Shown here piece by piece: positions 20,747 through 33,160 of a stretch of 64,000 nt of DNA (position 1 is the first letter of the stretch; every line of letters starts with the position of its first letter). The position numbers and the translations under genes are program-made. Under the pieces are notes generated by a model that ran no database searches, had not been told where the DNA came from, and was given only the letters and a program-made list of their open reading frames with translations. This stretch comes from Rebecca billardiae RCC1528 (taxonomy: Eukaryota > Protista > Haptophyta), in NCBI GenBank assembly GCA_965240325.2, contig OZ251223.1, positions 372,001 to 436,000 of the forward strand, given 5' to 3'.

Positions 20747-20875
20747 CGGCCGCGTGCGCGCGCTCGCGTCGCGTCCGGGCAATGACAACCGAGGGCACCG
20801 GCCCGCGCGCGCCGCGCGGCGCGTGTGCGGCACTCGTCCGGCCCGGGCGGTGCATCAAAGAGGCGCAATGGCCGC

Positions 20876-22597
20876 ATGAGAGCGTCGGCCCGAGCTGGAC
20901 TAGTGGCCGCGACGCTCTGGCGGCTGACCGCGGGGCTGGCCGCGATGGCGGACGCGGGCGCGGCGCTTCGCATCGACCCGCACCTGCGCAGCGTGTGCTG
21001 CTCGGCCTGCGGCGGCTTGGGCATGCGCGCCGCGCGCTCGCGGAAAGCGCAACGCGCCGCAGCTGGCGGGAAGGTCCCGACCGCGCCGTGCAAGGCGTGC
21101 AACGGCGACGGCGTGGTGGAGAACGTGCATCGGGCCGCTCGGCTCGCCGACGCGCCTCGCGAGCAGGCTGAGCTGGCGGACGACCGTCCCCTCGTCGCCG
21201 TCATTGGCGGAGGGATCGCTGGCGCGGCCGCCGCGCTCGGCCTGCAGCAGCGGGGCGTGCGCGCGCTCGTGTTCGAGAAGGACGGGTGCTTCGACGAGCG
21301 CTCGCAGGGGTACGCGCTCACACTCCAGCAGGGCCACGCCGCCCTTCGCCGCTTCGGCATCTCGCTGGCGGACGAGGGCGTCGTGCCCGCCGCGCACATG
21401 TCGTTCAGCGCGGACGGCCGGCAGCTCGGCCGTTTCGGCGACGGCCGACGGCGCGCGGCGGCAGACGCGAGCGCGGCGGCAGGCGCGGCGTGCGCGCCGG
21501 CGTGCGCGCCGGCCGTCGCGGATGCCGACGCGGCCGCGCGCGCCGTCGCCGCCGCGCGCGTGCGCCGGGGCCGCAGCAACCTCATCATCCCGCGGCAGCG
21601 GCTGCGCGGCGCGCTGCTCGACGAGCTCGCGCCCGGCACCGTGCGTTGGGGGCACGCGCTTGCTGGGTGCGAGGAGCTGGCTGACGGCCGGGTGCGGCTG
21701 CGCTTCGCCCGGCGGGCTGAGGCGGGCGGTGGCGAGCTCGCCGTCCACGCCGCGCTCGCCGTCGGCGCCGACGGCATCTGGTCCGCCACGCGCGCCGCGC
21801 GCGCCGCGCCCGCGGGCGGCGGCCCGCAGCCCTTCCACTACTTGGGGCTATGTGTGGTACTGGGGCGCGCGCGCTGCTCGCACGCGCACGCGCGCGGGGA
21901 GCACATCTGGGAGGTGCTCGACGGGCGCGCGCGGCTGTACGCCATGCCGTTCGGCGCGGGCGGCGACGCCGCCGACGCCGGGCCGGTCACGATGTGGCAG
22001 CTCTCAGTGCCGATGCCGCTCGAGCGCGCGCGAGCGCTCGCGGCCGCGGGCCCGCGCGCGCTGCTCGCCGCGGCCATTGAGGTCTGTGCGGGGTGGTGCG
22101 CGCCCGCGCCCGAGCTCGTGCGCGCCACCTCGGCCGAGGACGTGACAGGGTACCCGGCGTTCGACCGGCCGCTCCCGCGCGCCGACGAGCTGCGCCCGCC
22201 CGGCTCGCGCGTCGCGCTCATCGGCGACGCCGTGCACCCGATGTCGCCCTTTAAGGGGCAGGGTGCGAACCAGGCTTTGCTCGACGGCCTCGGGCTGGCG
22301 CGCGCGATCGGGCGGTCGCGCGAGTTCGGCGCGCCGACGGCGTCGAGGCTGGCGCCCGCGGTCGAGCTCGAGGGCGCGCTGCGCGCGATGGAGGCGGAGA
22401 TGCTGCGCCGCGCCGAGCTCAAGGTGCGCGCGTCGGCGGAAGCGGCAGCGTTCCTCCATTCGCCCAGCGCGCTCGCCGCGGGCAACTTCACGCGCGCGCA
22501 CGTGGCGGCGACCGATGCGGCGGCCAAGCGGCCTGCCGCCGAGATCTCCGCCGCCGATGGCGCGGATGACTCGCAATCCGAGGATGCGGCGGACTGA
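20876..22597 (+). CDS. FAD-dependent monooxygenase with N-terminal CxxCxGxG zinc-finger pair
   Basis: CSACGGLG...CKACNGDG; VAVIGGGIAG, GADGIWS, IGDAVHPMSPFKGQGANQALLD. Confidence 0.87.
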   Translation: MRASARAGLVAATLWRLTAGLAAMADAGAALRIDPHLRSVCCSACGGLGMRAARSRKAQRAAAGGKVPTAPCKACNGDGVVENVHRAARLADAPREQAELADDRPLVAVIGGGIAGAAAALGLQQRGVRALVFEKDGCFDERSQGYALTLQQGHAALRRFGISLADEGVVPAAHMSFSADGRQLGRFGDGRRRAAADASAAAGAACAPACAPAVADADAAARAVAAARVRRGRSNLIIPRQRLRGALLDELAPGTVRWGHALAGCEELADGRVRLRFARRAEAGGGELAVHAALAVGADGIWSATRAARAAPAGGGPQPFHYLGLCVVLGRARCSHAHARGEHIWEVLDGRARLYAMPFGAGGDAADAGPVTMWQLSVPMPLERARALAAAGPRALLAAAIEVCAGWCAPAPELVRATSAEDVTGYPAFDRPLPRADELRPPGSRVALIGDAVHPMSPFKGQGANQALLDGLGLARAIGRSREFGAPTASRLAPAVELEGALRAMEAEMLRRAELKVRASAEAAAFLHSPSALAAGNFTRAHVAATDAAAKRPAAEISAADGADDSQSEDAAD

Positions 22598-22902: not shown

Positions 22903-25841
22903 TCACGCGCCCGCGGCGACCGCGCGCCGCTGCACGATCGCCTCGGCGCCGACGGCCGGGCTGTATGGCCGGAGCGCGGGGCGCACGTACGAGGCGTCCG
23001 CCGCGGCCGCGCCCAGCTCTGCGAACGCGTCCACCTGCACGATGGCGTCGCGCGCCGCCTCGACCGAGTCGAGGAAGGCGGACTCCTCAGCGGTCGGCTG
23101 CCGCTGCTCGCGCTTGAGCACGCGCCGCAGCGCGTCCGCCTCGACCGCGCGCGGCATCCAGTCGCGCAGCATCGTGATGCGCGCGCGCTCGTCCGCGGGG
23201 AAGAACGTGTCGTCGTGGAACAGCCGCCACACGCCCGTGTCGTGTGTGAGCAGCGACGAGGTCGCCTGCACCAGCTTGTCGTCGGGCGGCGCGTAGCTCG
23301 CGCCGAGCGCGCGCGCGGCGGTGAGTGCCATGAGCGGCCGGATCGGCGCGAGCGGGAAGTTGGTCCGGACCCCGTCGAGCGCGTCCTGGCACTCGGCGAG
23401 CAGCGAGCGCATCGAGTAGTGCATCGCCGTGCCCAGCCCGCCCACGCCCGCGCGCTCGGGGCGCGCACAGTACCACAGTGTCGCGTACCCCAGGAAGAGA
23501 GTTGACAGCGCGTCCGCGAGCCGGCCAGACACCATCTCCTCGCGCTTGAGGCCGCCGCCGAGCGACAGCGCGAGGTCGGTGGTCGCGGCGAAGGTGGCGG
23601 CGAGCCGGCGAAGCTGCGCCTCGTAGTGTGCAACGGCGGCCGAGTCGACCGTCGCCGTGTCGCCCGCGCTGCCGCGGCCAGTCTTGGGTGCGGGCGCGCT
23701 CAGCGCCGCCGCGCTCGAGCCGAGCGCGCGCACTGCCGCCGGGCGCGCGCGGCGCGAGCGAGGGAGCGGCGCGCGAGGGGCGCGCGGGTGTGAGCGCGCG
23801 GACGGCGCGCGGGCGCCACCAAGCCACTGCCCACTGACCGCCACGGGCGCGGCGCGCGCGCGCGTCGCGCGACGCAGCGCTCCCGCGGCGCGGCGCGCGG
23901 CGCGGCGCGGCGCGCGGCGCGCGGCGCGGCGCGGCGCGCGGCGCACCGACACTGGCGACGGACGAGGAGATGCCATGGCTGACCATGTTCGACAGCTCAC
24001 GGCGGAAGCCCGCCGCGTCGTCGCCCTTCTCGAGCGTGCGCATCAGCGAGTACAGGTGCGGGTGCGAGCGCGTCACGCCCTGCCCAAAGATGATGAGTGA
24101 GCGCGTGAGCGTGTTCGCGCCCTCGACCGTGATGCCTGTGAGTGGCGTGGCGCACGCGCGCGCGGTGTGGCGGGCGCAGGCGGAAGGGTGCGCGGCGCCC
24201 GGGCCGTGGCGGCGGCGCGAGGACGGGGTTGAGACAGCCGCGCGCGCCGGCCGCAGGCGGCAGCATCGGCGCGCTCACTCGCGCGCGTGCTCGACCCGCA
24301 CGCGCACGCGCACGCGCACGCGCACGCGCACGCGCACGCGCACGCGCACGCGCACAGAAGGCGCGGCGAACAGTCCAACAGCACCAGAAGCAGGCGTCAC
24401 CACCAACAACACATTGCAAGCACAGAACCCAGGGCGCGCTCCCGGACTTTCCGCCGGACTTTCCGCCGGACTTTCGTCCGGACTTCCCGCGAGGCGCGCG
24501 CGCACCGATGGGCGTCATGTTGTACCCGCCGACCAGCAGGTTGTTGGGGCCGCGCGAGATGGCGGCGCCGGCCATCACGTCCATCGCGTCGGTCACGACC
24601 TGCCGCCCGCGCTGCGTCGCCTGCTGCTTGAGCACCGCCGAGAGCACCGCGGGCGACTCGTGGTGGTCGACCATCGCCGCGACCAGGTCGGAGCCGGCCG
24701 TGCAGATGAGCGCGTTGCCGCAGATGCGCGCCACGTGCTCCTGCACGCCGCCCATCTCGGCGATGGGCACGCGGAACTGCGCGCGCAGCCGGGCGTACGC
24801 GCCGACGCTCACCGCGGCCATCGCCGAGCCCCCCGTCGCGCCCGCCGGCAGCGAGATCCCCCGCCCCTCCGAGAGCTGCTCCATTAGAAAGAGCCAGCCA
24901 TTGCCCGCCTGCGCCTGGCCGCCGAGCAGCGCCGACATCGGGATCACCACGTCGTCGCCCTCGACGGTGCCGTTCATGAAGGCGTTGCCCGCGGGGTCGT
25001 GCCGCGCGCCGATGCGCAGACCCGGGTGCGCGCGCTCGAGCAGCGCGATCGTGATCCCCTCCGCCCCCTGCCCGCCCAGCAGCCCGTCCGGATCCCGTAG
25101 GTGGAACGCCAGGCCGACGATCCCGGCGACGGGCGCGAGCGTGATGTAACGCTTCTTGAACGAGGCGAGGACCTCGAGGGCGCCGTCGGCGCGCTTGCGC
25201 ACGACGCCGTCGGCCTCGTGCATCGACGCCGCGTCCGACCCCGAGTGCGGCGCCGTCAGCGCGAAGCACGGGATCAGCTCGCCGTTCGCGAGCCGCGGCA
25301 GGTAGTTGGCGCGCTGCTCGTCTGTGCCGTACGCGATCAGCAGCTCGCCCGGGCCGAGCGAGTTGGGGACCGCGACGGTGGCGCCGGCGTTGGGCGAGGC
25401 GGACTGGACCTTGCGCAGGATCTTGGACACGGCGTACGCCGAGAACCCCTTCCCGCCCCACTCCTCGCCAATCTTGAGCGCGAAGAAGCCGTTCTGCCGG
25501 AGGTAATCCCAAACCGGCTTGGGCAGGTCGCGCGCCTCGGCGATGGCGTGGTCGTCGAGCATGGCGCACAGCGTGGCGACCTCGTGCTCCATGTACGCCT
25601 GCTCCCGCGCGCTGAGCTTCGGCTCGTACTTGCTCAGCGCCGAGAGCTGCGCGCCCCCCTCGAAGAGCGTCCGCTCGAATCCGACGCCGCCCGACTCGAG
25701 CGCCGCCTTCTCCGTGGCGGAGATCGGCGGCATCATCGACTTGGCGAGCTTGTACGCCGCGCCGAACACCGCCCGCCGCGGCTGCGCCGCGTGCAGCGCG
25801 CCGAGGCGGGCGAGCGCGCGCGCGGGCGTGCGGCGAAGCAT
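22903..25841 (-). CDS. fadE: FadE-type acyl-CoA dehydrogenase with mitochondrial-like presequence
   Basis: MPPISATEKAAL, VPNSLGPGELL, PCFALTAPHSGSDAAS, KRYITLAPVA, GRGISLP, GITVEGANTLTRSLIIFGQG. Introns 24505-24136 and 23946-23733. Confidence 0.88.
24297..24488. repeat. (GCGCAC)n hexamer run plus 12-bp (CGGACTTTCCGC) tandem in FadE intron 1
   Basis: ~9-10 hexamers at 24297-24355; ~4 dodecamers at 24442-24488. Confidence 0.85.
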
Positions 25842-26954
25842 CGGGGCGCGTGGACGGTCTTCGGCGGGGGGAGGAGCAGCTGCCCGACGACTCGGCAGCC
25901 CTTCGTCGGCGGTCCTGGACAGTTGGTCGGCTTTTCGTTCCTTTGTGTGTCCCAAACCCACGCCCAGTCGACGTCGACGTTGGTGCATTTCGTTTTTCGC
26001 ATTTTGCCAAGGCGCGCGAAGAAGCCTCGCGAGGACGGTTGAGGACGCGGCAGAAGCCGCGAGCGGGGGAAAAGACTGATGAAGACGCGGCGTTTTCAAA
26101 TCATTATTCAGGGTTTGATCAGACTCGCACCGTCACACTACGCCGATCAGAGGGGGCCGCCGTTGGTTGACGATGAGTGCCACGCGCTCCGGCCAGAATG
26201 GCTCCAGGCCGGCATCAGCGCAGTGCACGCGCAATTCGCGAACGGGACGTGCCCTTGTAGTGGCGCGGATGGCCTTGCACGCCGCGTGCACGTATGCTGA
26301 TGACCTTGGGATACCGCCTTGTCGGTGCTTGTCACTGGATGCACGTGCCTGATTGCGTGCATGCGGCCCAACGCCGGGTGCTCGGGAGTATGGACATGAC
26401 CCTCTCGAGATGACGCGCAAGGACCAATCCCCTCTTCAGCAAGATCTGAGTGGTAAGTGACCCCCCTCACCGACTACTGGCGTTTGCAGCTCCCGAGGTC
26501 GGGTTGCGTGCATGGCAGTAATCGTGCTGAACGATGCGGCCGACCCGTGTGCACCCGACAAGGAGCGTCAAGGAGTGGAGGCTGCGGGCAGCTTATGGTG
26601 ACTCAAGTCCCTCAGGAGACTGTACTCTCAGGCGTGTCCTGCGACCACACGTGCCACCCAATCGCATTGCTGGAGCGCCGATCGCTGGCGTGCGGCGCGC
26701 TTGCCTCACCTCGCACCGGCCAGAAAGCGAGCGATGGGTGTCGATTTTTACCCATGTCGTTCGGTGACAAGTACGGGTGATGAATATGCGGCCGGGCGGC
26801 CAAGCGCAAGCTTTCTATCGTGCAGTACTGGTAGACTATCTATAAGAGGATCTCGCACGATCTACTACTATTGTAACGAAAGCGGAGACGAAGGCGGCGC
26901 CATCTCGCCGCTTGAAACTGGGCGACCTTGGCACCGTCGCCCGTGACGAGAGCC

Positions 26955-29431
26955 ATGGCGCACTCTGCGGCCACGCTTGCCCTGGTCGTGCTCGCCTTCC
27001 TCGCGCAGCTTGCTAGCGCCGCCAAGCACAAGCATACTGCTCATAAGAATCCTCTCGAATCACAGGGCCAGGTCCAATTCTGCCTTTCGAATCCGAACAC
27101 GTGCACAGAACTGTGCGCGCTGCGCGCTGTCGAGGCTGCACGTGGGCTTGCGGGGAGCATGGCGCGCGAGCACGCTCGTGGTGCACGCGTGATGTCGGCA
27201 TACCCTCCAGGAAGCCGGCAGGACCACACCCACGCCCCCTTGCGATGCGCCGCCGCGCCCGACAATCACGGATATTCACCCGCGCCTCCCACCGCTCTGG
27301 CGCGCGCGCGGGCGCCTCGGCACGCAGGAATCTATTCGGAGAGTTCACTAGCACCATGCCGACCGAGGTGGGTCTAATGGCCGCCCTCACTAACATGTGC
27401 GTGCTGACGCCGCGCCGGCTGCGACCGGGCCTGTGCCGGCCACCTCCTGCGGACAGCAAGGGCCATCGCACGAGTCGTGATGGGAGGCGTGCAATGCGAC
27501 GAGATCCGTCATACGAGGCTCACGACCGCGTCTCCCCACCAAACCCTTCCGCCCCGCTGCCCCCGGGGTGCACCCAGTTACATGCTAGCGCCCAAGGTCA
27601 CCGGCACGATGCCGACCGAGGTCGGTCTACTCACGGCCCTCGCTACCATGTGAGCGCTCACGCCGGCATCGAAGGCTGGGCGGGATGCCGGGCGGCCCAC
27701 GCTGCCTGGCTCGCCTCGCTGCTCGGCGCATGCGCCCATGCGTCTCGATCAGGACGGCCGCGTGCACCCGATGGCGGCCATAGTCACCTCACAGGCGTGC
27801 AGTGTCGTTGTAGCTGACTGATCGCACCACGCACCCGCCCCACTGCACCACCATGGGGCAACGTGCGCGCGCGCGCATGGGCACACAGGGGGCTGGAAAT
27901 GACCGCGATGACTGGCTCGTTGCCGACCGAGGTGGGCATGCTGGCCGCCCTCAAGGACATGTGCGCGCTGGCGCTCGCGGCGCTTTCCACGCGCGAGCGC
28001 TGCGCCATCCGGCTGAGCGGGCGGCGTGCTTGCCGTGTGTCCCCGCTGCTAACGCTCGCCCAACTGCTCCGCGACGCACGCACACGCGGCCTTGCGAGCA
28101 AGGGCTGCTGTGCGCGCCGCGATCGCAATCGTCGCCTCGAGCGAGGCCCATCGCACGCCGCTGACAGCAGCGCGCGCCCATCCACTCGCACCCCCTGGCC
28201 GCGGTGGCGCGCGCGCGCGCACATGACTTCCTTTCGATCTCGTGCGCCACGCAGTAAGCTCAAGGACGACGGCTTCTCGGGCGCACTCCCGACCGAGCTG
28301 GGCAAGCTGGGCGCCAACCTCGCGCACATGTGCGTGCGCTGCGCACAGACGAACGGCCTGCCACGACCCGCGAGGCCGCACGCCCGCGCACGCGACGAGG
28401 CCCATCTCCTCGTGCGTGGCCGATGCCTCATGACAGCGCACGTGTCCCCACCCACGCCTCCGGCCGGGGCGTGCGCGCGCGGCGCGCAGTGACATGGGGC
28501 GGAACGCCCTTACTGGCACCGTGCCGACGGAGGTGGGGATGCTGACCAGCCTGACCTCAATGTGCGTGCTGCCCTGGCGGCATGCCGGGCGCGCGCCCGT
28601 GACGCTCGCCCGCCTTGCTTGCTCCGGCCGGCCGGCCATCCCAGATGCCACGATGATCACGAATCAATCAGCATGGCCGCCGAGCGCGCGCGCTCGGCGT
28701 GGCGAGAATCTTGCCGCGTGCGATGAGCCCCGTCATGCGACTGATGAGCGCGCGCACCCACCCGCCCGCCCGCACCTTGTCTGACCGGCTGGCGGCGCGC
28801 GCCGGTGCACCCGCTGCGTGCAGCTACATGGCCTTCAACTCGCTCAGTGGCATCGTGCCGTACGAGATCAGCAATCTGAAGCAGTTGCAAGTCAAGTGCG
28901 CGCTGCCGCGCTCAGCAGCCCGCGCGCCAAACCGCGGCCGGGCGAGCCGCTGGGTGCCCTTGGCATTCGCCCGGCATGCTGCTCCGCACCCATGCCCATC
29001 GCGCGCACGGGGCAGCCCCCCCACGCGCGCCGTGCGACGAGCATCGCGCCGTGCGATTGCCGCGGGGCCAGCCACGATGTGCAGCCGATGGTCAGCAGCG
29101 CGCACCCACTCATCCGCACCTGCGGGACCGGGTCTGGACTGGCGCGCGTGCGCGCGCGCGGGCGCGCAGGTGGCGGCCAGGGCGGCCAGTCAGCTTCCAG
29201 AACAAGAACAAGAACAAGAAGGACAAGGACGAGGGCGACGAGGACAGCCTTCGGTCGGAGGGCACGCCAGCTTCTGCGCATGCTCTCGCGCTTCTCAAGT
29301 CGGCGGGCCGCACGCCAGCGCTCGCAGCCATCGGCCTCATGCTGGTCGGCGTGGCCGTCGGCTTTGCGGCGGCGCGCTCGGTGGGGACTCGGCCTCGGGG
29401 GAGCCGCTCGCAGCCACCGCCGCTCGTCTGA
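26955..29431 (+). CDS. LRR receptor-like membrane protein, one LRR per exon (8 exons)
   Basis: Exons 26955-27112, 27328-27396, 27578-27649, 27889-27960, 28255-28329, 28490-28561, 28824-28895, 29170-29431; all introns GT-AG, phase 2. Signal peptide, six plant-type LRRs (..TG.(M/L/V)PTEVG.L..L), TM helix, short tail. Confidence 0.88.
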
Positions 29432-30018
29432 GCAGCGAGCTGCGGACCGCAGCCAGTGGAATGAGTTGCCGGCCTGGTACGCATTGTCAGTACACTTGCA
29501 GTACTGGCATGCCAACGGGCCGCTGACGACGGTCGTCCGAGCGCGCTACTTGAGTCGTCATCAGTGAGTGACAGTGACTATACTCATACGCTTAGGACTC
29601 CCGTCTGCCAGGCCCAGTGCCGCTGCCCCGTGGGCCGTGCGGCCCGCGCGGCCGAGCAGGCTCCTAAATAAATAAAGCGCGCGCGCATCATGGCGTCTGA
29701 CTGCGCGTACTCGAAACACGACTTATTACGACTCCGCCGATGTTGCCAGTGCCGTGGCATTGCGCGTCGTCATGATGGCCCGATGGGCGTGACGCACGCG
29801 CACTGTCATCAGCGTGCGTGGTGCCCATCCATCGGCGTCGGTGGCGCATCACGCAGGACGCTTGCTTGCAGCGCGCGCGGCATGGTGAGCAGTGAGCACC
29901 CCGCTGCCTAGTGCCTGCTGGGGGCATGGTGCGCTCCGCGGCCACGCTCGCGGTCCGGCCGAGCAGCGGCCACTCCGCGCGCGCGAACGGTCGCCCCCCG
30001 GGCGGCCACCGCCGCGCC

Positions 30019-31491
30019 TCAGCCCGCGATCGGCGGCCCCAGGTCGACCACCTTGCCGGGGTTGAGCAGGTTGTGCGGGTCGAGCGCGCGCTTGACCGCG
30101 CGCATCGCGGCGACGCCCTCGGCGCCGTGCTCCGCCTCGAGGTAGCCGAGCTTGCCCACGCCGATGCCGTGCTCCCCCGTGCACGTCCCGCCCACCGCGA
30201 GCGCGCGGCGCACCAGCCGCTCGTTCACCGCCTTCACCGCCGCCACGTACTCGGGCGGGTCGTCCTCCTTCACGCCGAGGATCACGTGGAAGTTGCCGTC
30301 GCCCGCGTGCCCAAACAGCGGCCCGCACACGTCGAAATCGGCGATGTCGCGCGCGGTCGCGCGCATCACCTCCGCGAGGCGCGAGATCGGCACGCACGCG
30401 TCAGTGACGATCCCCTTTGAGCCCGGCCGCAGCGCGAGCGACGCGTAGTACGTCGAGTGCCGCGCTGCCCACAGGTGCCGTCTCTCTGCCTCGCTAGTGG
30501 CCCATTTGAACTCGCCGCCGCCGTGCGCGCCGCAGCACTCGGCGGCGAGCTCGGCCTGCTCGGAGACCGACGCGTCGGAGATCCCCGTGAACTCGAGGAA
30601 GAGCGTGGGCACCGGCTCCAGGTCGGCCACCTCCTTCGGGTACGCGTTGAACGCCTCGATCGCCGTCGCGTCCAGCAGCTCGCACCGCGCGACCGGAATG
30701 CCGCATGCGAGGATGGATGTGACCGCGTTCGCCGCGCCGTCGAGCGTGTCGAAGGTGCACACGGCGGCGGAGCAGGCGGACGGGATGGGGTGCAGCCGCA
30801 CGCGCACCTCGGTGAGCACGGCCAGCGTCCCCTCCGAGCCCACGAGCAGCCGCGTCATGTCGTACCCCGCGCTCGACTTGCGCGCGCGCCCGCCGGTGCG
30901 CATCACCTCGCCGGACGCGAGGACGCTCGTCGTGCCCAGCACGTTCTCGCGCATCGTGCCGTACTTGACGGCGGCGGTGCCGCTCGCGCCGCACGCCGCC
31001 ATGCCGCCGATCGACGCGTCCGCGCCCGGGTCGATGGGGAAGTACAGCCCGGTGTGCCGCAGCTCCGCGTTGAGCGCGTTGCGCGTGACGCCTGCCTGCA
31101 CGAGCGCGTCAAAATCTTCCTCGTTCGCCTCGACGACCTGGTTCATCTCGGAGAGGTCGAGGCACACGCCGCCGTGGATCGCCTGGATGTGGCCCTCGAG
31201 GGACGTCCCCGTGCCGAACGGGATCACCGGCACGCGCGCCTCCGCGCACAGCCGGACGATCGCCGCCACCTCCTCTGTCGAGGTCGCGAACGCGACCGCC
31301 TGCGGCGGGATGGCGGCGTGGTGCGACTCGTCGTCGCCGTGGCGCTCGAGGATGGTGGGGTTGACGCTCACGCGGGTGCACGCCCCCTCCAGCCGGCCGA
31401 GCAGAGGCGCGCTGAGTGCGCTGTACGCCCTCGACCCCTTGGCTCGCCGCGCGGCAAGGATAGTGCGCGCCGTCCACGCCGCCGCCGGCAT
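30019..31491 (-). CDS. LDHD: D-lactate dehydrogenase (FAD-binding oxidoreductase type 4), mitochondrial
   Basis: PFGTGTSLEGH, FPIDPGADASIGGM, KSSAGYD, GSEGTL, GHAGDGNFH, GEHGIG, DP..LLNPGK. Confidence 0.92.
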   Translation of the reverse strand: MPAAAWTARTILAARRAKGSRAYSALSAPLLGRLEGACTRVSVNPTILERHGDDESHHAAIPPQAVAFATSTEEVAAIVRLCAEARVPVIPFGTGTSLEGHIQAIHGGVCLDLSEMNQVVEANEEDFDALVQAGVTRNALNAELRHTGLYFPIDPGADASIGGMAACGASGTAAVKYGTMRENVLGTTSVLASGEVMRTGGRARKSSAGYDMTRLLVGSEGTLAVLTEVRVRLHPIPSACSAAVCTFDTLDGAANAVTSILACGIPVARCELLDATAIEAFNAYPKEVADLEPVPTLFLEFTGISDASVSEQAELAAECCGAHGGGEFKWATSEAERRHLWAARHSTYYASLALRPGSKGIVTDACVPISRLAEVMRATARDIADFDVCGPLFGHAGDGNFHVILGVKEDDPPEYVAAVKAVNERLVRRALAVGGTCTGEHGIGVGKLGYLEAEHGAEGVAAMRAVKRALDPHNLLNPGKVVDLGPPIAG

Positions 31492-31540
31492 GCTGCGGGC
31501 CAAGAATGACGGCGCGCGCAGAAGAGTCACTACAAAAAGT

Positions 31541-33160
31541 CTCCGCCAGCGGAGCATCCGGGCAAGGGGCCCAGACCCTCCGCCGGCGGAGATTTTTGTG
31601 GCCACGAAAAATCCCCGCTGGCGGAGCATGGAATGCTCCGCTGGCGGAGCCTGGGCTTGCAGGAATGACACAACAAACGTACTAGTTATGGTATCAGAAG
31701 TCTGTCAACCACCGAACAGCAGTCACCTCCGCTGGCGGAGCTCGCTAATGAGCCATGCCTTTTGTAAACTAATACACTCGGCACTTGAACTGAGCTCCGC
31801 TGGCGGAGCTTCGGGGGCGCCGAATGCCATTCTTGATGACCCACCTGACTTGAACTGAGCTCCGCTGGCGGAGCGTCGGTGGTCAGCGCCGTGTGTCATA
31901 TCGGAGAAATAATGCTAAGCCTTTCAACGCATTCATACTCTGCTGTGCCACACATTCAACCTCCGCTGGCGGAGCTCACTGGCCTATTCGACTTGAACTG
32001 AGCTCCACTGGTGGAGCCTCGGCTGCGCCGAATGTCCTTAATCGATGACCCACTCTCGACTTGAGCTGAGCTCCCCTGGCGGAGCTTTGGTGGCGCCGCA
32101 TGTCATATTGGAGTAACGCGGAAGCGTCAACCGTAGTCATATCTATATTGAGACTCAACCTCCGCTGGCGGAGCTCGCGGACCTACTAGTATTCAACTTT
32201 AACTGAGCTCCGCTGGCGGAGCCTCGGCTGTGTCGAATGTCCTTATCGATGGCCGACGTCTTGACTTGAGCTGAGCTCCGCTGGCGGAGCTTTGGTGGCG
32301 CCGCATGCCATTTATGGGAATAATGTGAAGCCGTTAACCATAATCATATCCATATTGACACTCAACCTCCGCTGGCGGAGCTCACGGACCTATTCGACTT
32401 GAGCTGAGCTCCACTGGCGGAGCTTTGGTGGCGCCGCATATCATATTGGAGTAATGCGAAGCCGTCAACCGTAATCATACGTATCCATATTGATACTCAA
32501 CCTCCGCTGGCGGAGCTCACTGGCCTATTCGACTTGAACTGAGCTCCGCTGGCGGAGCCTCGGCTCCGCCGAATGTCCTTATCGATGGCCCACGTCTTGA
32601 CTTGAGCTGAGCTCCGCTGGCGGAGCTTTGGTGGCGCCGCATGTCATATTGGAGTAATGCAAAGCCATTAACTACCGTAATCATATCCATATTGACACTC
32701 AACCTCCGCTGGCGGAGCTCGCGGGCCTATTCAACTTGAACTGAGCTCCGCTGGCGGAGCCTCGGCTGCGCCGAATGTCCTTATCGATGGCCCACTTGAC
32801 TTGAGCCGAGCTCCGCTGGCGGAGCTTTGGTGGCGCCGCATGTCATATTGGAGTAATGCAAAGCCGTTAACTACCGTAATCATATCCATATTGACACTCA
32901 ACCTCCGCTGGCGGAGCTCGCGGGCCTATTCAACTTGAACTGAGCTCCGCTGGCGGAGCCTCGGCTGCGCCGAATGTCCTTATCGATGGCCCACGACTTG
33001 ACTTGAGCTGAGCTCCGCTGGCGGAGCTTTGGTGGCGCCGAATGTCATATTGGAGTAATGCGAAGTCGTTAACCGTAATACTATCCATATTGACACTCAA
33101 CCTCCGCTGGCGGAGCTCACGGACGTATTCAACTTGAACTGAGCTCCGCTGGCGGAGCCT
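31541..33160. repeat. Left subterminal array of the palindrome GAGCTCCGCTGGCGGAGCTC in ~200-bp higher-order units
   Basis: ~26 copies of ctccgctggcggag or variants; unit starts near 31958, 32157, 32364, 32499, 32701, 32901, 33099. Confidence 0.92.

Follow-up and report, generated by a model that had tools for sequence, protein, structure and literature searches.

The layout in which each LRR occupies an exon of its own is already known, down to the position of the intron, and the gene described here is one more member. Rice LRR-kinase genes contain 72-nt exons bounded by phase-2 introns that interrupt xxLxLxx at its first Leu (PMC3050792), and the introns of our gene agree with these in both position and phase; LRR-RLK II/SERK genes are composed of a signal-peptide exon, a Cys-pair cap exon, LRR exons, and a membrane-helix exon (PMC7496461). 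The brown-algal ROCO genes with a 'type I LRR exon' also have one LRR per 72-nt exon and phase-2 introns (Zambounis et al., 2012, PMC3341825; PMC11378527); growth and shuffling by exon duplication have been proposed for them, and an immune role has been suggested (PMC3341825; PMC11378527). In Tetrahymena, LRR exons of 90 bp flanked by phase-2 introns number in the tens of thousands and are distributed over genes of differing age groups (PMC6564038). To the extent that they are covered in PMC11378527, where they are cited, the vertebrate glycoprotein-hormone (LH/FSH/TSH) receptor genes carry one LRR per small exon and have introns of phase 2 throughout. For haptophytes, we found no description of a one-LRR-exon layout in the open-access literature.

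The window analyzed here, a stretch of 64,000 nt from the haptophyte Rebecca billardiae RCC1528, contains a predicted gene of eight exons at 26955-29431 on the forward strand, which we rebuilt by script from the window sequence (Table 1). The joined frame of 852 nt, or 283 codons, has no internal stop and terminates with TGA. The script reproduced the six consecutive exons (69/72/72/75/72/72 nt) of the original prediction, each holding one LRR and each placed between phase-2 introns. All seven introns have GT..CAG borders and are in phase 2, and five of the seven donors read AT|GT, as had been stated, the remaining two being CT|GT and AA|GT. The split codon specifies the first hydrophobic residue of xxLxLxx, i.e., the residue preceding x-L/M-x-x-N. 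Since the LRR exons lie in differing genomic frames and the lengths of six of the seven introns are not divisible by 3, the frame can be maintained only by splicing. The GC content is 51-70% in the exons and 71-77% in the introns. With a phase-2 intron on either side and a length divisible by 3, any of the six LRR exons could be skipped or copied and the frame would be preserved.

Table 1. Positions of the predicted LRR gene, its exons and introns, the neighboring genes, and two intronless arrays elsewhere in the genome
Feature	Position	Strand	Length (nt)	Description
Exon 1	26955-27112	+	158	First ATG following an in-frame stop; hydrophobic core at residues 5-23, basic spacer, Cx6C pair preceding repeat 1; donor CT|GTGCGC
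Intron 1	27113-27327	+	215	
Exon 2 (LRR 1)	27328-27396	+	69	Short by one residue; Asn to Glu, Gly to Ser; donor AT|GT
Intron 2	27397-27577	+	181	
Exon 3 (LRR 2)	27578-27649	+	72	Pro at the Asn position; donor AT|GTGAGC
Intron 3	27650-27888	+	239	
Exon 4 (LRR 3)	27889-27960	+	72	Thr at the Asn position
Intron 4	27961-28254	+	294	
Exon 5 (LRR 4)	28255-28329	+	75	Longer by one residue; Asp at the Asn position
Intron 5	28330-28489	+	160	
Exon 6 (LRR 5)	28490-28561	+	72	Canonical plant-type repeat; Asn retained
Intron 6	28562-28823	+	262	
Exon 7 (LRR 6)	28824-28895	+	72	Beta-strand half canonical, 3' half divergent; donor AA|GT
Intron 7	28896-29169	+	274	
Exon 8	29170-29431	+	262	Lys/Asn/Asp-rich linker, predicted membrane helix at residues 50-68, 18-residue basic tail, stop TGA
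FAD-binding monooxygenase-like frame	20825-22594	+		Neighboring gene
Acyl-CoA dehydrogenase	22906-26099	-		Upstream; Pfam N-terminal, middle, and C-terminal domains and ACDH_C; two abutting open frames
FAD-linked oxidase	30022-31671	-		Downstream; Pfam; single 550-codon frame
L010	G000:C10:1694000-1696500	-		Intronless array, 72-nt period
L011	G000:C20:968500-971000	+		Intronless array, 72-nt period

In GC-rich DNA, long open frames that are spurious are common on either strand, and the exons could in principle be such chance open stretches, with no gene present. We regard this as extremely improbable because the six units reach 32-42 bits each against the LRR profile, all lie on one strand, and have AG and GT exactly at the phase-2 positions. 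In addition, we counted five occurrences of the DNA motif encoding PTE[VL]G in the window, where 0.18 would be expected, and over 100 units at other places in the genome have an identical layout.

Some further sequence features were noted at the locus. Intron 4, whose length is a multiple of 3, has a read-through frame free of stops, and its retention would add 98 residues in frame. A TATA-like sequence (ctataagagg) at approximately 26839-26848, about 110 nt upstream of the start codon, may be a promoter signal, and a run of aaataaataaag at approximately 29667-29678, about 240 nt downstream of the stop codon, may be a polyadenylation signal.

The original prediction described the product as a receptor-like protein with a signal peptide and a TM helix, and the hydropathy of exons 1 and 8 backs this description. 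The 19-residue mean has a maximum of 2.08 at residues 5-23 of exon 1, representing a signal-peptide-like core, and a maximum of 2.35 at residues 50-68 of exon 8, representing a predicted membrane helix; hydropathy was the sole criterion for both calls. The order in the predicted protein is signal peptide, six LRRs, charged linker, one membrane helix, and an 18-residue tail. A Cys-pair cap is present only at the N-terminus, as Cx6C in exon 1, and no Cys follows repeat 6. The predicted product has the architecture of a receptor-like protein (RLP) without a kinase, in which the membrane topology is deduced from hydropathy. It would be a small type I membrane protein that exposes a short extracellular solenoid of six repeats of the PS type (see below) and has no intracellular signaling domain. 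Such a protein would bind an extracellular partner, and other proteins would be needed to signal or anchor.

The genes adjoining the LRR gene encode enzymes in long open frames with few introns, which agrees with the earlier statement that the neighbors have few introns relative to this gene. The nearest downstream coding sequence lies 590 nt away on the opposite strand. Pfam searches of the flanking open frames returned acyl-CoA dehydrogenase and FAD-oxidase domains only, and no ROC-COR GTPase was found near the gene. As the flanks are occupied by unrelated enzyme genes, there is no room for a kinase or another signaling domain.

The gene contains six tandem units of 23-25 residues, and alignment of the six exons gave the consensus xLxxxxxTGTxPTEVGxLxALxx. 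As originally described, the 3' half (TGxxPTEVGxL) is conserved, whereas the beta-strand half is variable and has lost the Asn in part: the GxxPTEVG core is retained in five of the six repeats, and the structural Asn in two, with a different residue in each of exons 2-5 (Table 1). Read with their split codons, exons 6 and 7 form full LxxLxxLxLxxNxLsGxIP units. When the six-exon profile was compared with all PDB sequences, it aligned in register with the ectodomains of plant LRR receptors, one repeat after another. The best matches were At4g26540 (7e-31) and FLS2 (1e-30), followed by GSO1, ERL1/2, MIK2, HSL1, BRI1, and SERK1, and then by Leptospira LIC proteins. Pfam gave no match to single exons of 22-24 residues even at E<=10. 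Pieces of this size are too short for such a test, and we therefore relied on the comparison of the exon profile with PDB and on Pfam analysis of an intronless paralogue with the TGTVPTEVG motif, which scored 91 bits for LRR_1 (cut-off 20.6) and 65 bits for LRR_8 (cut-off 27). By these sequence matches, the repeats belong to the plant-specific (PS) 24-residue LRR class, LxxLxLxxNxL(t/s)GxIPxxLGxLxx.

The window gene shares with land-plant LRR-RLK genes the PS class of repeats, the 72-nt one-repeat exons, and the phase-2 introns at the first-Leu position. With the exception of the kinase, the exon order of LRR-RLK II genes corresponds to that of the window gene point for point. Differences are the lack of a kinase domain and of a C-terminal Cys cap in the window gene, its split codon, which mostly encodes Ile or Met and not Leu, and its four degenerate repeats out of six. 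Furthermore, its host is a GC-rich alga, and the shared intron position could reflect either homology or convergence.

The parallel with brown-algal ROCO genes that had been drawn for this locus holds in the literature (PMC3341825; PMC11378527): like the window gene, these genes devote a 72-nt exon to each LRR and have introns of phase 2. The closest precedent for the predicted layout, though, is found in the land-plant LRR-kinase genes and not in ROCO. The ROCO exon runs GxxPxxL...LxLxxNxLx, which places its intron after NxLx and thus elsewhere in the repeat than in the window gene, where the intron interrupts the beta-strand codon. In addition, ROCO proteins are cytosolic and contain ROC-COR GTPase and kinase domains, whereas the window gene encodes a predicted signal peptide and membrane helix. 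Finally, orphan and reverse-strand LRR exons are found in Ectocarpus introns, and the window gene has none of them.

The LRR genes of Tetrahymena resemble our gene in an extreme bias toward phase 2 and in the clonal expansion of one exon-plus-intron unit. Their age groups range from young, near-identical to old, diverged arrays, and the window gene fits the 'old' class within its own family. However, the Tetrahymena exon has 90 bp and not 72 bp, the repeats belong to another LRR class, and thousands of genes are involved. The LH/FSH/TSH receptors differ in having animal-type LRRs that are fused to a seven-helix receptor.

A search of the 72-Mb assembly with the six-exon profile returned 867 first-look candidates, of which 150 out of 150 scored at E<=6e-4. 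We fetched 15 loci from the genome for script analysis of the array layout. Thirteen of these are arrays like the window gene, with a 69- or 72-nt exon, an acceptor of the type ..GCAG, a donor AT|GTRYG, and phase 2 in the same split codon; the period in the sampled arrays is 200-300 nt, and the introns are near-identical in many of them. The other two loci (L010 and L011; Table 1) contain contiguous repeats of the same LRR type and are intronless, showing that the family exists in both intron-bearing and intron-free versions. These two arrays mostly carry ATG where the codon is split AT|G in the intron-bearing arrays, which indicates that the family has Met, and not Leu, at the first beta-strand position. 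A strict pattern, in which PTExG is tied to the donor by a fixed gap, occurs 106 times genome-wide on at least 17 contigs, compared to zero occurrences for the reversed control. The LRR family that had been postulated for this alga is borne out as a large one by the 867 candidates, the 13 like arrays, and the 106 pattern matches. Hence, one LRR per exon is the usual arrangement throughout a large family of genes in this alga and is not peculiar to the window gene.

Across 133 family units, hypervariability (3.3-3.9 bits) is seen at exon positions 1, 3, 4, 22, and 23, which correspond to the x residues on either side of the split codon and are predicted to lie on the face that binds the ligand. 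Hardly any variation is seen at positions 9-16 (GTLPTEIG), with less than 1 bit in the GxxPTExG core. The variable beta-strand half had been taken as a mark of diversification, but the same contrast is the normal profile across the 133 units. LRR proteins in general combine a variable beta-strand half with a fixed other half. Being normal for the family and for LRR proteins, the contrast does not by itself point to diversifying selection.

In the original prediction, the exons of the window gene were seen as cassettes that are exchanged, and a single copy of the gene was named beforehand as speaking against this idea. The gene is single-copy at the DNA level; elsewhere in the genome, we detected only exon matches of 43-73 nt. 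In blastn comparisons among its introns, there was no homology beyond short GC-rich runs of at most ~60 nt, and the best intron-to-intron match comprised 31 nt (E 3e-4). Nucleotide identity among its exons is 0.57, compared to 0.55 between unrelated loci, whereas within-locus exon identity reaches 0.62-0.82 in the other sampled arrays. In a nearest-neighbor analysis, one of the six exons had its nearest neighbor in the same gene, and no informative clustering was seen. Hidden, orphan, or reverse-strand LRR exons are absent from 26001-30500, where the profile hit only the six known units, all on the forward strand. The gene has thus undergone no recent duplication, traffic of cassettes is not borne out for it, and it lacks the recent paralogues and the orphan or inverted exons on which the case for shuffling in Ectocarpus is built. 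By sequence comparison, it is the oldest, most diverged, and least dynamic array among those sampled.

The explanation that we consider likely is that the window gene, old and intact, encodes an ordinary receptor-like LRR protein and that its exon structure is left over from expansion through the duplication of exons together with their introns. According to this explanation, the gene would have descended from tandem copying of one intron-plus-exon unit, the intron of which was in phase 2 within the codon of the first hydrophobic residue of xxLxLxx, and the same unit would have been amplified in many other genes of the genome. The copying would be old in the window gene, whose introns no longer resemble one another and whose repeats have drifted, with loss of the structural Asn in four. 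In young arrays elsewhere in the genome, the intron has been copied along with the exon. Copies of a mobile intron element were also considered as a source of the introns and rejected for the window gene, because its introns are unlike each other.

Alternatively, the gene might take an active part in a recognition or immune system that diversifies, in which symmetric exons are skipped, duplicated, or swapped through alternative splicing or recombination to provide many binding surfaces. Every LRR exon is indeed symmetric, such that a skip or copy keeps the frame, and intron 4 is in frame and stop-free. The family is large, its predicted ligand-facing positions vary far more than the GxxPTExG core, many of the sister arrays are young tandem exon-plus-intron copies, and comparable claims, including alternative splicing, have been made for brown-algal ROCO genes. 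However, the single copy, the lack of homology among the introns, and the absence of orphan or inverted LRR exons argue against such activity in the window gene, as does the fact that its exons are equidistant from everything sampled. Growth by exon duplication yields symmetric exons automatically, and plant receptors with developmental roles have such exons without diversifying. We therefore consider membership in an active diversifying system unlikely.

A different view of the same divergence is that the gene is the remnant of an LRR family member that is decaying or has lost its function, with the frame still open and the repeats drifting. This would explain the loss of the Asn and the irregular beta-strands in four of the six repeats; the Asn is kept in 97 of the 133 family units, compared to two of six here. 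The absence of the Asn from four repeats, with Pro in one of them, could indicate relaxed constraint instead of a working binding domain. The repeat lengths are likewise irregular, and the tail exon found no relatives at E<=0.01 among 210 candidates, which were proteins of 101-320 residues; the query was the stop-free frame 28880-29428, chosen to admit proteins of this size, and residues 98-183 alone were scored. This negative result carries little weight; nor did we find an orthologue of the gene. Against decay, the eight in-frame exons, the seven canonical splice-site pairs, the start, the signal-peptide-like core, the membrane helix, and the stop are all intact, five repeats have kept the GxxPTEVG core, and the GC contrast between exons and introns is maintained. 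Stop codons are rare at ~70% GC, so that an open frame is weaker evidence than usual, and the preserved splice sites and phases weigh more heavily. Decay of the gene thus appears quite improbable, and we favor the old but intact receptor-like protein.

As such, the window gene adds one more receptor-like LRR protein to the alga. Of broader relevance is the 72-nt phase-2 exon unit itself, as a large LRR family in a GC-rich microalga is made of the same unit that land plants use. A tentative and rather doubtful extension is that the haptophyte-type family and the land-plant LRR-kinase genes share, besides the PS class, the very same intron, in which case the exon-plus-intron unit would be a single ancient module, either inherited or transferred between lineages. 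In this alga, the module would still feed a large, partly very young surface repertoire with diversifying ligand-facing residues, and the window gene would be an old survivor. Two questions become testable, namely the origin of the 72-nt phase-2 unit and the receptor diversity that may arise from such arrays in phytoplankton, e.g., in relation to viruses or bacteria. For the latter, the younger arrays of the genome are better suited than the window gene.

The genome-wide search also revealed contiguous LRRs of the family in giant open frames, at G000:C10:2820252-2839596 (12452 codons) and G000:C13:1230663-1236422 (10598 codons), and further long LRR open frames of 9774, 6581, 5740, 5564, and 5161 codons; in DNA of 70% GC, these giant frames are to be regarded as candidate genes only. 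An array at the start of contig 4 (G000:C4:114-1419, reverse strand) repeats an array on contig 3 (G000:C3:1051946-1053682, forward strand) hit for hit and with equal scores, corresponding to a contig-end duplicate or an assembly overlap. At G000:C1:2692961-2707491, at least nine near-identical tandem copies of a multi-exon unit follow each other with a period of ~1417-1553 nt, and this unit contains LRR exons with the donor AT|GTGCG.
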